The translations under genes and the position numbers were made by a program. This document shows positions 1 through 6,460 of a stretch of 6,460 bases of DNA, piece by piece. The notes beneath the pieces are model-generated. The model made no database searches and had not been told where the DNA came from. It was given only the letters and a program-made list of their open reading frames with translations. The first letter of the stretch is position 1; the number at the start of each line of letters is the position of its first letter. Origin of the DNA: Ascoidea asiatica JCM 7603 (taxonomy: Eukaryota > Fungi > Ascomycota); the NCBI GenBank assembly GCA_001600695.1, contig BCKQ01000056.1:1-6460 (forward strand), written 5' to 3'.

Positions 1-776
1 AAAAAATTTTTTAATTTTATTAATTTATTAAATTCAATATAATTTAAATTTGAAATTTCTGAGATTGAATTATTTGATAATTTTATTTTATATTTATTTT
101 GTTCAAAATAACCTTCTGGACCATCTAAGAATAAGATTTTATTTTCAATTGAATTTGAATAAGTAAATTTATTTTTATTATTACTGGCGGTAGTAATTTT
201 ATTATTATTTATATTGGCGGTAATGTTTTTATTGTTATTATTTTTATAAAAATTTGAAGATATTAAATTATTAAAGAATTTATTATAAAATTCTTCTTCT
301 TCAATAGTTTTTGGTAATGGAGTTTTTGTAAAATTATTAATTTGAATTTCATCATTATTATTATTATTATTATTATTGTTTCTAGTTATATTATTTGAAT
401 ATTTAATTTCAAATTTTTCAGGAGATGCATAACCTGCAATTTTTAATTTTTCATAAAATGAATTTTTATTTTTTAAAAATTTATAATTATTATTATTTTC
501 ATAATCATTAAAATCTTCATCATCATCAGATTGATCAAGTACTCTTTTTAAAGGTATAATTGAATTTGTAAATTGATTTATTTGAGATTTTAATGGAGAT
601 TTTAATGGACTTTTAATTTGATTTTTATATGGAGATTTTATTGGAGATATTATACCTCTTTTTAGACTTGAGATTGAATTTAATTTATTATTATTTATTT
701 TATTAATTGAAGGTAATATTATTTCATCTTTTGATATTCTTTTATTTGGAGATTTCAAAGATGGAATATTCTGCAT
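1..776 (-). CDS. ORC2: Origin recognition complex subunit 2, N-terminal part (about 258 codons, runs off the left edge)
   Basis: Manual translation from ATG (774-776) is open to the window edge: MQNIPSLKSPNK...NFTKTPLPK...LFLDGPEGYFEQNKYKIKLSNNSISEISNLNYIEFNKL. NFTKTPLPK (309-335) and FLDGPEGYFEQ (99-131) match recalled S. cerevisiae Orc2 segments NFTPTPVPK and FLDTFEGYFDQ that precede the conserved domain. The low-complexity N-terminus has six S-P-x-K CDK sites. Probably missed by the ORF track because there is no stop in the window. Confidence 0.85.
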   Translation of the reverse strand, partial: MQNIPSLKSPNKRISKDEIILPSINKINNNKLNSISSLKRGIISPIKSPYKNQIKSPLKSPLKSQINQFTNSIIPLKRVLDQSDDDEDFNDYENNNNYKFLKNKNSFYEKLKIAGYASPEKFEIKYSNNITRNNNNNNNNNDEIQINNFTKTPLPKTIEEEEFYNKFFNNLISSNFYKNNNNKNITANINNNKITTASNNKNKFTYSNSIENKILFLDGPEGYFEQNKYKIKLSNNSISEISNLNYIEFNKLIKLKNF

Positions 777-1024: not shown

Positions 1025-1192
1025 AGCCCTGGAAGAAAACAAAAACAAAAAAACACGTTTGAAAAAGCCCTGAAAAAGCCCTGAAACAAAGAAAGAACGA
1101 GAGATTTGGCTGTTACCCGGAGCAGTCACCCATTTTCAGTGTGTGAATTAAAACTTTTCAATTGAGGCAGTATCAAAGAATGAATATAAAAG
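1025..1192 (+). promoter_or_regulatory. snoRNA-type Pol II promoter, shared divergently with ORC2
   Basis: Tbf1-like AGCCCTG(A) at 1025, 1066 and 1077; perfect Reb1 site TTACCCGG at 1113-1120; CAGTCAC (Homol-D-like) at 1123-1129; RRPE-like AAAACTTTTCA at 1150-1160; TATAAAAG at 1185-1192; A-rich tract at 1036-1053. Tbf1/Reb1/poly(dA)/TATA is the architecture described for yeast snoRNA promoters. Confidence 0.65.
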
Positions 1193-1283
1193 AGACTCAA
1201 ATTCACTTTGTTTTATTATGTTAGTTTATTCATTTATATTATTATTATCATTAAAAGTATTTAACCAATACCATGAATAAAGA

Positions 1284-1561
1284 GTAAGTTTACAATGATT
1301 TAAATATCAATATTTATATCTATATATATATAAGTTAATTATAAATTTCATGATGACCCAAATGCACAAGTTGAATTTCTTCGACCGATTTCTAAATTAT
1401 GAGGATTAAACATTACCGAGCTTTTTAAATCTGATAAATTTATAAAAAAAAATAAAATATGTATATGTATATATTAATTATTAATTATTAATGGATATTG
1501 ATATAAATATGAATAATGTTGTAAATTATTAAAGGATTATTACTAACAAGTTTTATTATAG
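1284..1561 (+). other. Spliceosomal intron (278 nt) of a non-coding snoRNA host transcript
   Basis: 5' splice site GTAAGT at 1284-1289, canonical branch point TACTAAC at 1541-1547, T-rich tract, 3' splice site TAG at 1559-1561. The joined exons give only a 9-codon ORF (MNKDYKLSF*, ATG 1273, TAA 1578-1580). Confidence 0.8.
1346..1438 (+). ncRNA. SNR47: Box C/D snoRNA snR47 (SNORD36/U36 family), guiding 18S Am619 and 25S Am2220 (S. cerevisiae numbering); ends approximate
   Basis: Box C ATGATGA 1350-1356. D' guide GTTGAATTTCTTC 1370-1382 is complementary to 25S GAAGAAAUUCAAC. Box D' CCGA 1385-1388, box C' ATGAGGA 1399-1405. D guide CGAGCTTTTTAA 1417-1428 is complementary to 18S UUAAAAAGCUCG. 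Box D CTGA 1431-1434. The D+5 rule lands on an A in both targets. A 10-bp closing stem forms between TTATAAATTT 1339-1348 and AAATTTATAA 1436-1445. Confidence 0.92.
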
Positions 1562-1920
1562 TTATAAATTGTCATTTTAATTACTTATTTTTATAGTTTT
1601 TATTTAATATATTTTATTTTTTAAATTAATTCTTATCTTTAAATTGTAGTTATAATATTGTATTTATTTTGATATTGTCTTTAAGATTAAATAAAAATTG
1701 ATTAAGACTTAATTACTTTTATTCATTTACTCTTGAGTGTTAATTTTATTACTTAATCATTTGATTGGATAATATATTAGAGTCAATTAAAGAATATTTT
1801 AAAAGTTGTAAATCATTATCATATTAAGTTTGTAAATGGTAATTATGTAAGAAGAGTAAATAATAATTAATATATAGTAAATAAGTGAATAAATAAATAA
1901 TTACTTAATTAATTACTTAA

Positions 1921-2670
1921 TTAATTTCTTGAATTTATAATATCAATAAATTCAGGTTTTAAAGATGCACCACCAACTAAGAAACCATCAACATCAACTT
2001 TATCTTTAAATTGATTTGCATTTTTACCATTAACAGAACCACCATAAAGAATTCTAATTTTTGAAGCTTGTTCATCACCAATTAATTTAATTAAAAATTC
2101 TCTAATTGATTTATGAGTTTCTTGAGCATCATCTGGAGTTGCAGCTAATCCAGTACCAATAGCCCAAACAGGTTCATAAGCAATAACAATATTTTTCCAA
2201 TCTTTAACTAATTTAGAAACTGCAGTTAATTGTCTTGAACAAATTTTTAAAGTTATACCAATTTTTCTTTCATCTAAAGTTTCTCCAATACATAAAATTA
2301 CTTTTAAATTATTATCTAAAGCAAATTTTGTCTTTGAAGCAATAAATTCATCAGATTCTTTAATTATTGTTCTTCTTTCAGAATGTCCAAGAATTACCCA
2401 AGTTGCACCAATATCTTTAATTTGTTCAACAGAAATTTCTCCAGTATATGCACCTGATTTTTTATCAAATGAATTTTGTGCAGCAATTTGAACAATTGGA
2501 AATTTTAAATTTTTTGAAACTGAAAAATCTAAATAAATTGAAGGTGGAGAAATTACAATTTCTGTATTTTTAGGTAATTCACTTTCATTTAATCTTTTAA
2601 TAATTGTTTCAATTGAATTTTTTGAACCATTCATTTTAAAATTACCACCAACGAAAAAAGTACGAGACAT
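1921..2670 (-). CDS. TPI1: Triosephosphate isomerase (249 aa)
   Basis: [15 protein letters not shown] start, ILGHSERR (catalytic His), [11 protein letters not shown] (catalytic Glu, loop 6), [14 protein letters not shown]. The true start is the ATG at 2668-2670 in an AAAA-ATG context. The ORF track's 2721 start is a TTG extension. Confidence 0.99.
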
Positions 2671-2737
2671 TTTTAAAAAAGATTTATAATATAATTTAGT
2701 TAATAATGAAATTTTATTCAATATTTGTTATTGTTAT

Positions 2738-2770
2738 TGTATTTGTATTTGTATTTGTATTTGTATTTGT
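2738..2770 (+). repeat. (TTGTAT)n hexanucleotide microsatellite in the TPI1 leader
   Basis: About 5.5 tandem copies visible. Confidence 0.9.
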
Positions 2771-2797
2771 TATTAGATAACTTATAATTGACAATTG

Positions 2798-2835
2798 ATA
2801 ATATAATATAATATAATATAATATAATATAATATA
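2798..2835 (+). repeat. (ATAAT)n pentanucleotide microsatellite
   Basis: About 7.5 perfect copies. Confidence 0.95.
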
Positions 2836-2866
2836 CAAAAGCTATTAATGAGAAGAAATGCAAAGG

Positions 2867-2874
2867 CTTTTATA
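2867..2874 (-). promoter_or_regulatory. Probable TPI1 TATA box (TATAAAAG)
   Basis: CTTTTATA on + reads TATAAAAG on -, about 200 bp upstream of the TPI1 ATG. It is part of the palindrome CTTTTATAAAAG (2867-2878). Confidence 0.55.
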
Positions 2875-2939
2875 AAAGAAAGAAAGTGAGAAATTGAGAA
2901 AGTGAAGAGATAATGCAGTAATAAAGAGAAGACATCATC

Positions 2940-3257
2940 TGGTGGTGGGTGGTAGGTAGTGTTACTGTTAGTGTTACTGTTAGTGTTACTGTTAGTGTTA
3001 CTGTTAGTGTTATCATCCGCTGCCATGCACCAGGCAATCACTCCGGGGTAGTCTCAGCAGTACCATGGCACTGGTGGTGGATCGTCAGATGGCACCGGGA
3101 CGCAAATCACACGCCACAGTGGAAATAGAGACCACTTCGATGGGTGTTCTCGGTCTGTCCTTGACTTCTTTGTGCTGTGTCCGTGATATTTGACTGGGGA
3201 TATATTTAACTGCGCCGGTCATGTGATCTTAGTTAGCTGCCATCAGGTAGTACCCGT
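2940..3257. promoter_or_regulatory. GC-rich core of the divergent TPI1/DET1 promoter
   Basis: Abrupt GC-rich island between two divergent ATGs. Contains the bHLH (Cbf1/Tye7-type) site ATCACATG on minus at 3220-3227, CATCC at 3014-3018, and a near-palindrome CAGTACCATGGCACTG at 3058-3073. Confidence 0.65.
2957..3012 (+). repeat. 12-bp minisatellite TAGTGTTACTGT, about 4.7 copies
   Basis: Perfect units at 2957, 2969, 2981 and 2993, plus a partial unit at 3005. Confidence 0.95.
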
Positions 3258-3302
3258 ATTATATTTTATTTATACTTTATTTATACTTTATTTATATTAT
3301 TT

Positions 3303-3338
3303 TATTATATTATATTATATTATATTATATTATATTAT
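3303..3338 (+). repeat. (TATTA)n pentanucleotide microsatellite in the DET1 leader
   Basis: About 7 perfect copies, preceded by an 11-bp repeat TTTATTTATAC at about 3265-3295. Confidence 0.95.
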
Positions 3339-3462
3339 TATATTTATTTATTCTCATTCAATTTGTATTATATATATTATACTCCTTCTCCTTTATCAAT
3401 CATTCAGTTTATTCTTATTTCAAATTCTTATCTCAACTTCATCAATTACAATATAAATTAAA

Positions 3463-4467
3463 ATGACAAGACCAAGATTAATAATTTTAGTACGTCATGG
3501 AGAATCTGAAGGTAATTGTGATAAAAGTGTAAATAGATATATACCAAATCATAAAGTACCTTTAACTAAAAAAGGTCAAGAACAAGCTATTTTAGCTGGT
3601 AAAAAATTAAGAAAATTTTTAAATAAAAATGATTCAATTTTATTTTATACTTCTCCATATATTAGAACAAGACAAACTTTAGATGGTATAATTAAAGGTC
3701 TTGAATTCAATTCTGAAAGTAATAACAATAATAACAATAATAATAATAAAATACCATATAGAGTTCATGAAGAACCAAGAATGAGAGAACAAGATTTTGG
3801 TAATTTTCAATCAAATTCTATAGAAATGGAAAAAATTTGGAAAGAAAGATCAAATTATGGTCATTTTTTTTATAGAATTCCACATGGTGAAAGTGCTGCT
3901 GATGTTTATGATAGAGTTGCAGGTTTTAATGAAACTATTTTTAGACAATTTAATAGTAATAAATTCCCAACAATTTTAGTATTAATAACTCATGGAATTT
4001 GGGCAAGAGTATTTTTAATGAAATGGTTTAGATGGAATGTTGAAAAATTTGAAAATTTAAGAAATATATCTCATTGTAAATTTCTTATTATGCAAAAAAA
4101 TATATCCTTAAATAATAATAATAAAAAATATAAATTATTAACAAAATTAAAAACTTGGGATGAAACAAATGATAAAGAAATTGATAATTATAATCATGAT
4201 ACTGAAAGATCTTTAATGTTAAATGCAACTTCTAATCTAGTTGATAATAATAATCTCGATAATAATCTCGATAATAATCTCGATAATAGTTCTAATAGTA
4301 ATTTAAATAATAATTTAAATAATTCTATTTTAAATGATACTAATAATAAAGAAATTGATGAAATTTTAAATAAAGAAAAAGAAACTATAAAAGATCAAAA
4401 ATTAAAAGAAGATAAAATAAAATTTGCTTTTGAAAAAAGAAGAAATTCAAGAAAATTATCTTTAAAA

Positions 4468-4498
<31 letters not shown>

Positions 4499-4692
4499 GT
4501 GGTGAAATAAAAGTTATAGAAAATAATTTAAAACATAAATTATCTTTAAATAATTTTAGTGATGATGAAAATAATAATGATGGTGAATCAAAACATTATA
4601 GTAAATCAAATTTAAAAGATTTAAATGATTTTTTAGATCTAGATCAAAATTATAATATCCCAACAGATTCTATATTATCTGATGTTCAATAA
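3463..4692 (+). CDS. DET1: Broad-range acid phosphatase, histidine phosphatase (phosphoglycerate mutase-like) family, Det1 orthologue (409 aa)
   Basis: PRLIILVRHGESEGN (RHG motif), YTSPYIRTRQT, EEPRMREQDFGNFQ, YGHFFYRIPHGESAADVYDRVA, LITHGIWARVFLMKWFRW. Adjacent to TPI1, as S. cerevisiae YDR050C and YDR051C are. Asn-rich C-terminal tail. Confidence 0.92.
4249..4288 (+). repeat. Coding 12-bp repeat AATAATCTCGAT x3 (NNLD repeats) in the DET1 tail
   Basis: Three perfect units plus a partial one, translating as NNLDNNLDNNLDN. Confidence 0.9.
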
Positions 4693-4849
4693 TATTATAA
4701 TTTTCATCCATAACTTTTTAAATGAATATACGGTAATAAATAATAAATAATAAATAATAAATATAAAGTATATGAAATAATAGTAAATCCATATAAATGG
4801 TCTCAACCTCATTTATTCTTCTAATCATGGGTCAAGAAATAACATTTTT

Positions 4850-5080
4850 TGGGACTGTCATAATATAGAATTTCAGTGGGACACTGCACTCACAAAACCT
4901 TAACTCCTTCAAACCAACCATCATGTGCATTAGTGTACCTATATGCACCCACAAAACGTTAATTTTTTTGAATCCATGTCTGCGGTACTGCGGCAGCCGT
5001 CGAATTTTTAAAATTCCCCAAAAAGGCACGGGAAAAAACCACAAAACAAAACAAAACAAATATAAAAAAAGTGCCCCTTT
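4850..5080 (+). promoter_or_regulatory. GC-rich promoter-like island with TATA box; no downstream ORF in the window
   Basis: Local GC rise after the DET1 3' region. TGCACCC at 4944-4950, CGG/CCG triplets at 4983-4999, A-rich tract at 5033-5060, TATAAAAA at 5061-5068, CCCCT at 5074-5078. Confidence 0.5.
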
Positions 5081-5159
5081 GAAATAAACAACTCAATTCA
5101 ATCAAATCAAGTTAATTCTTTTGAGTATTTTAACTCTCAGAGAAATAATGTAAGAAACA

Positions 5160-5189
5160 AAGAAAGTAAGAAAGTAAGAAAGTAAGAAA
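5160..5189 (+). repeat. (AAGAAAGT)n 8-bp repeat, about 3.7 copies
   Basis: aagaaagt aagaaagt aagaaagt aagaaa. Confidence 0.9.
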
Positions 5190-6365
5190 TTAATAAAGTA
5201 ATGAAATAACTTTCCTTTTACTCATTAAGAATAATTTCCTCTTTCAACTACCTTCTTTTCATAATAAAATAATAACATGAAGCTGGTTAACTAATCAAAT
5301 TAAAAATATGAATAATGTTATTTGAAATATTATGACTGATACTATGGTATTTTACCGATAATGAATAAACAAACTATTAATTTTGTATTCATAACTTCTT
5401 AAAACTGAAAATTACTTATTTTAATTTCAGGTAAATTTAAAAATTCCTTTAAACAATAACAATATTACATAACATTTTATTACTAATAATATTTACTTCC
5501 ACTCAATTAAAATAAACAAATCATTTTTGATTTAAAAAAAATCTTAAGGAAATTTTAATTTTCATAATTCTCAATCTTATCAATTATTAATGGTTAATGA
5601 TATTTAAAATTTTATAAACAGTATTTAATGAAAAAAATAAAAAATTTACCTCCTTTATTTATTTATCCTCCTTGAAATATCCTTGATTCCATGTAAATAA
5701 TGTAAATTAACTTACAATCATTTCATTTATCTCTATTCAATTTCATTCATTTAAATTAGCAATTATTAGATATCCAATACCAAGTATCAAATCAAATTAA
5801 ATCAATTCAATTCAATTCAAACTAATTTATAAATTAAATCATTTGGTAAATTAAATCAATTTACCCTTAATTTTTAGATCAATAAATTTAGTTAAATTAA
5901 TTCCTTAATTCATTAAATCAAACTATATTTTAATAATCTAAATCAATTAATTTCTGTCATATAAATTTTATAATTTATTTAATCATTCAATTATATAAAT
6001 TTAAAATTTATTCCATCTCATTCACTTTCATTCATTTTCATTCACTTTAATTCTTCAATAACTCATTTAATTCAATAAAATTCAAATATATGCAGTCATT
6101 TTCAAAAGGAGAAATTATTGAACTTTAACTACAAATTCAATTCTTTTATTTGTTTATTTATTTATTTAGTTATTTATTTATTCTTTTTGTTTGTTTATTT
6201 TTTTTTAAAATTTCTAGTTTCTAATATCTAGTTTACTTGTTTATTTATTTATTTACTTCTTTTTTTCACCTACTCATTTATTCATTTAACTGACCTATTT
6301 TTTAACTATTTACTTACAATACTCATATATTCAATCCTAGTTTATCCCAAACTAATAACTTGCCT

Positions 6366-6460
6366 TTTTATTTTATTTTATTTTATTTTATTTTATTTTA
6401 TTTTATTTTATTTTATTTTATTTTATTTTATTTTATTTTATTTTATTTTATTTTATTTTA
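6366..6460 (+). repeat. (TTTTA)19+ microsatellite running off the window end
   Basis: 19 perfect copies up to the last base. It may mark a contig end. Confidence 0.98.

Follow-up and report, generated by a model that had tools for sequence, protein, structure and literature searches.

A predicted spliced non-coding gene with snR47 in its intron, between ORC2 and TPI1 of Ascoidea asiatica

The window (the whole 6,460-nt stretch of contig BCKQ01000056.1 that was analysed) contains a box C/D snoRNA of the snR47 family, set between consensus splice signals on the plus strand in the interval that separates ORC2 from TPI1. The interval is best read, with a probability of about 0.9, as a spliced non-coding host gene whose intron releases snR47. 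Features are given by position in the window:

1..776, minus strand: 5' part of ORC2, divergent neighbour (BLASTP to Saccharomycopsis crataegensis ORC2, E 8e-16); the ORF runs off the left end
1067..1084, plus strand: two weak Tbf1-like words (GCCCTGA), by pattern match alone
1113..1119, plus strand: Reb1-type site TTACCCG (predicted binding) in the promoter common to ORC2 and the snR47 host
1185..1191, plus strand: TATA box (TATAAAA) of the predicted host transcript
1192..1283, plus strand: span holding predicted exon 1, placed by the TATA box and 5' splice site
1284..1561, plus strand: predicted spliceosomal intron, 278 nt (GTAAGT 1284-1289, TACTAAC 1541-1547, TAG 1559-1561)
1339..1445, plus strand: 10-bp terminal stem (1339-1348 with 1436-1445) closing boxes C and D
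1350..1434, plus strand: snR47 box C/D snoRNA (C 1350-1356, D' CCGA 1385-1388, C'-like ATGAGGA 1399-1405, D 1431-1434)
1370..1383, plus strand: D' guide, T1380 (D'-5) opposite 25S A2220 in a 14-bp duplex including one G-U pair
1417..1428, plus strand: D guide, T1426 (D-5) opposite 18S A619 in a 12-bp duplex
1562..1580, plus strand: predicted exon 2, from its start to the micro-ORF stop; its 3' end is bounded by convergent TPI1
1921..2670, minus strand: TPI1, convergent neighbour (Pfam TIM, E 1.6e-86; best match Ascoidea rubescens, 77%)

The snR47 snoRNA, its guides and the predicted intron

The window gave a single Rfam match to snR47 (RF01203), at 1346-1436 (full model, 52.8 bits, E 4e-4), and within clan CL00051 it scored best as snR47, not as SNORD36. 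Its identity as snR47, proposed in the initial annotation, was borne out by this match and by two intact guides that pair with 18S A619 and 25S A2220. The match was full length and the best of the clan but fell 8 bits short of the gathering score (61), which counts against the best explanation; syntenic homologues scored 59-68 bits with the same model. Boxes C, D', C' and D occur in order, starting at 1350, 1385, 1399 and 1431. In an alignment of the window with six homologues, boxes C and D and both guides were nearly invariant and boxes D' and C' varied slightly. The 10-bp terminal stem was present in both MFE and centroid folds and was matched by 1 of 1000 flank shuffles. An extra rRNA base-pairing segment 5' of the D' guide has been described for snR47 (PMC3116282). 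The corresponding segment of the window (1363-1369) reads TGCACAA, versus TGCAACA in four relatives, and formed only 4 straight pairs with the common 18S flank of A619, taken from the 18S of other species. This alteration may account for part of the lower Rfam score.

Eukaryotic rDNA contigs were retrieved with a pattern made from a guide and the relatives' extra-pairing segment. By the D+5 rule both guides selected A619 and A2220 on one rDNA contig (L051), which stood in for the species' own rRNA; its small subunit (1800-nt SSU) lies at 2050-3849, its large subunit at 4601-7996, and the lengths of its parts fit S. cerevisiae. In S. cerevisiae snR47 is assigned to 18S Am619 and 25S Am2220, and its loss has little effect (10.1101/2024.08.07.607065). 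L051 is a near-complete yeast-type rDNA unit within a bacterial genome record, and at least 92 stretches of eukaryotic 18S-like sequence were present in bacterial genome records among L042-L121, a contamination of public assemblies.

The annotated TATA box, ATG, GTAAGT, C/D boxes, TACTAAC and TAG were all read in place from the sequence. TACTAAC 1541-1547 is the sole [TG]ACTAAC on the plus strand of the scanned part, and TAG 1559-1561 is the first YAG past it. The ATG at 1273 opens a 9-codon ORF: joining 1273-1283 to 1562-1580 reproduced MNKDYKLSF* as all that the spliced exons would encode. Another upstream ATG (1218) opens 20 codons that stop ahead of the intron. Chance occurrence of the signals was estimated with order-1 and order-2 Markov nulls of local or all AT-rich non-coding DNA. 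In the 150 nt upstream, a consensus 5' splice site was expected with a probability of 7-14%; in the 150 nt downstream, a branch point with YAG was expected with one of 0.08-0.6%; and the two together with about 1-5e-4. The branch point supplies nearly all of the significance. The distance from box D to the branch point (106 nt, versus about 72 nt in two relatives) counts against the best explanation.

Because the host runs away from ORC2 and towards the 3' end of TPI1, it cannot serve as the leader of any protein gene downstream. The view that ORF-based annotation would miss this gene was upheld; ORF-based gene callers and a scan at the Rfam gathering score would alike pass over the locus, the latter missing snR47 itself.

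Upstream, a Reb1-type site was also found within 330 nt of box C in A. rubescens (L001), S. crataegensis (L002) and two further loci (L036 and L037), and further up in L026. TATA words likewise precede snR47 in L002, L036 and L037; in L037 the TATA and Reb1 words lie 116-130 nt upstream. PMC5416754 cites the presence of Tbf1 at snoRNA promoters in yeast. A 13-bp unit that includes CCCCT also occurs five times in the ORC2/snR47 promoter region (922-986).

Synteny and splice signals in relatives

Homologues of snR47 were found downstream of TPI1 and on the opposite strand to it in A. rubescens (L001), S. crataegensis (L002), the Saccharomycopsis-like loci L026 and L033-35, L036 and L037. ORC2 came next after snR47 in all of these loci except L001, and was divergent in L002, L026/L033, L036 and L037. 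The TPI1 sequences of the window and A. rubescens were joined with moderate support (93/87) in a single-gene tree. The snR47 pattern had no match within 10 kb of TPI1 in Pachysolen, Wickerhamomyces, Debaryomyces or K. lactis. Splice signals are given below in the order 5' splice site, branch point and 3' splice site, with distances in nt before box C (minus) or after box D (plus):

Window: GTAAGT, -66; TACTAAC, +106; TAG
A. rubescens (L001): GTATGT, -51; ATCTAAC or AACTAAT, +71 to +75; CAG
S. crataegensis (L002): GTATGT, -39; GACTAAC, +72; CAG
Saccharomycopsis-like L036: GTAAGT, -30; TTCTAAC, +30; TAG
L022 (unplaced): GTAAGT, -88; TGCTAAC, +95; TAG
L026, with L033-35 as three further independent assemblies of its species: GTATGT, -159; only TGCTGAT, then AAG, +71
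L037: only GTGTGT, -43; branch point absent

Conservation of splice signals around snR47 in relatives agreed with the intronic position first proposed for it. Convincing DNA similarity to the relatives was confined to the snoRNA. An ORF resembling the nine codons of the window was absent from L001, L002, L036 and L022, and the last 100 nt of exon 1 contained no ATG in L001, L002 or L033. Since the splice signals are kept in relatives but the 9-codon ORF is not, the host is taken to be non-coding, as had been suggested.

The two remaining species differ from this pattern; their syntenic snR47 loci lie at 5300-6300 in L026, 4680-4763 in L033 and 4330-4670 in L037. No TACTAAC with fewer than 2 mismatches was present within 260 nt in L037, and L026/L033 retains the weak signals listed above. 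In a TPI1 one-gene tree both fell outside Saccharomycetaceae, in a clade that is well supported and includes S. crataegensis, which bears the intron. TACTAAC was found upstream of the called TPI1 start in both L033 and L037, with a matching GTATGT in L033, which indicates that those genomes retain the canonical branch point. The signals of L026/L033 and L037 fit independent degeneration, in two species placed by a one-gene tree and with weak signals that may still be spliced. We tentatively suggest, at somewhat less than even odds, that the window holds the intact and probably ancestral state of a locus whose intron was lost again outside Saccharomycetaceae. If so, the splice-site degeneration model could be tested at a single locus in close relatives. 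The snR47 host of the window changes no model, and this graded decay of splice signals among relatives is the only lead with some reach.

Maturation and alternative readings

Under the preferred reading, a short RNA polymerase II gene, with a promoter divergent from and common with that of ORC2, would give a two-exon transcript encoding no conserved protein. The spliceosome would excise the intron (1284-1561), box C/D proteins would assemble on the snoRNA with the aid of the 10-bp terminal stem, and the lariat would be debranched and trimmed to an snR47 of about 90 nt. Intronic snoRNAs have been described as being freed by exonucleases once the lariat is debranched (PMC5033589, PMC8162545). 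Through its D guide the mature snR47 would direct 2'-O-methylation in this species at the equivalent of 18S A619, and through its D' guide at that of 25S A2220. The exons, once joined, would be a by-product, and would probably be degraded because only a 9-codon ORF is encoded.

It is also conceivable, if rather unlikely, that the intron is spliced and yet snR47 matures mostly without splicing, by Rnt1-type cleavage of a flanking stem followed by exonuclease trimming. PMC5033589 cites splicing-independent maturation of one snoRNA that is intronic in yeast, and pairing between the flanks of the window snoRNA was somewhat above that of shuffles (duplex -25 versus -17.6 kcal/mol; 1.9% of shuffles). 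L033 and L037 also retain the snoRNA despite degenerate signals. That snR47 persists in two relatives whose splice signals are weak or missing also counts against the best explanation, since it means that not every species requires the intron. Against maturation without splicing, the whole intron folded no better than shuffles (z +1.05), an outer 11-bp helix was equalled by 21% of shuffles, and the branch point and 5' splice site have both stayed perfect. An extended intronic stem was rejected as a special structure on these same values (whole-intron z +1.05, outer helix P 0.21), the terminal stem alone being significant.

Release of snR47 by splicing is likewise to be weighed against a free-standing exonic gene of the S. 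cerevisiae style, in which the splice signals would be vestigial or due to chance. GTA[A/T]GT alone is frequent enough in AT-rich DNA (7-14% per 150 nt) to arise in this way, but the joint chance estimate given above, together with perfect consensus signals whose order is conserved in four other loci, makes this very improbable. From box D to position 1590, moreover, the Nab3 word (TCTT) is absent and a single Nrd1 word occurs. A functional micropeptide (MNKDYKLSF) encoded by the spliced host, or a role of the host as the 5' leader of a protein gene, is scarcely credible: there is an A at -3 of the ATG at 1273, whose frame spans the junction, but a conserved micropeptide was rejected for lack of a like ORF in L001, L002, L036 or L022, and the next gene, TPI1, is convergent, with no plus-strand ORF of at least 60 codons before it in the window.

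Known systems and neighbouring sequence

The snR47 host of the window is a new instance of a published arrangement and is not novel. The initial annotation had described the arrangement as known as a class, in agreement with Donovan et al. (2016), who list four Candida-clade species in which snR47 occupies a 'non-genic intron' (PMC5033589, S1 Table), the same snoRNA in the same kind of intron. In Candida, roughly half of the snoRNAs lie in introns, most of them in transcripts without coding potential (PMC5033589). The class of non-coding intronic hosts is traced to Mitrovich et al. (2010) by the citing papers PMC5033589 and PMC3596301. Loss of snoRNA introns by splice-site degeneration, which the initial annotation had given as background, is likewise a published model and is credited to Mitrovich et al. 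(2010) in PMC3596301. Like the window, the Candida-clade loci carry one C/D snoRNA in the intron of a non-coding transcript with TACTAAC and YAG. The window differs in its Ascoidea-like lineage, in having GTAAGT and not GTATGT, in a longer AT-rich spacer to the branch point and in a 9-codon ORF that spans the junction; the Candida study was based on RNA-seq, whereas the window intron is predicted from sequence alone. Intronic snR47 is thereby extended from Candida to the Ascoidea/Saccharomycopsis branch, for which a literature search on snoRNA introns in Ascoidea or Saccharomycopsis returned one general review and no paper.

S. cerevisiae SNR47 (RF01203, CL00051) has two guides for 18S Am619 and 25S Am2220, as in the window. 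It is free-standing, as had been noted: it is described as monocistronic (10.1101/2024.08.07.607065) and with an NNS terminator (PMC7449698), whereas the window snR47 lies between splice signals. SNORD36/U36 (RF00049, same clan) has both guide sequences the same as the window; metagenome matches to the common pattern scored as SNORD36, some of them apparently in introns of protein genes. On three metagenome contigs that are not yeast-like (L013, L015 and L018), a same-strand match to RNase MRP RNA was observed, followed about 170-210 nt downstream by an snR47/SNORD36 homologue. L011 has a similar arrangement, and L027 probably does too. The RNase MRP RNA and the snR47/SNORD36 homologue on these contigs are possibly one transcript.

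TPI1 has no intron in the window or in A. rubescens, and Saccharomycopsis-like relatives have intron signals near the TPI1 start. The plus-strand ORF at 3463-4692 is a histidine-phosphatase-family gene, which we take to be DET1 from its place beside TPI1. CTG codons were absent from three ORFs of the window (1921-2670, 3463-4692 and 3-776; 918 codons). Avoidance of CUG in Ascoidea would fit this absence, and extreme AT bias alone could explain it.

At 4800-6460, a promoter-like block of higher GC content gives way to about 1.4 kb of AT-rich sequence that lacks an ORF and has a strongly negative GC skew. This interval gave no credible Rfam match and no DNA or protein similarity to the relatives' loci. 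Within it, ATGACTGA is followed by CTGA (5331-5408) with spacing as in a C/D snoRNA; it has no Rfam match and no box C consensus, and the resemblance is probably due to chance. In A. rubescens the same gene is followed by a gap of comparable length (about 1.75 kb), so that the interval may simply be intergenic or leader sequence.
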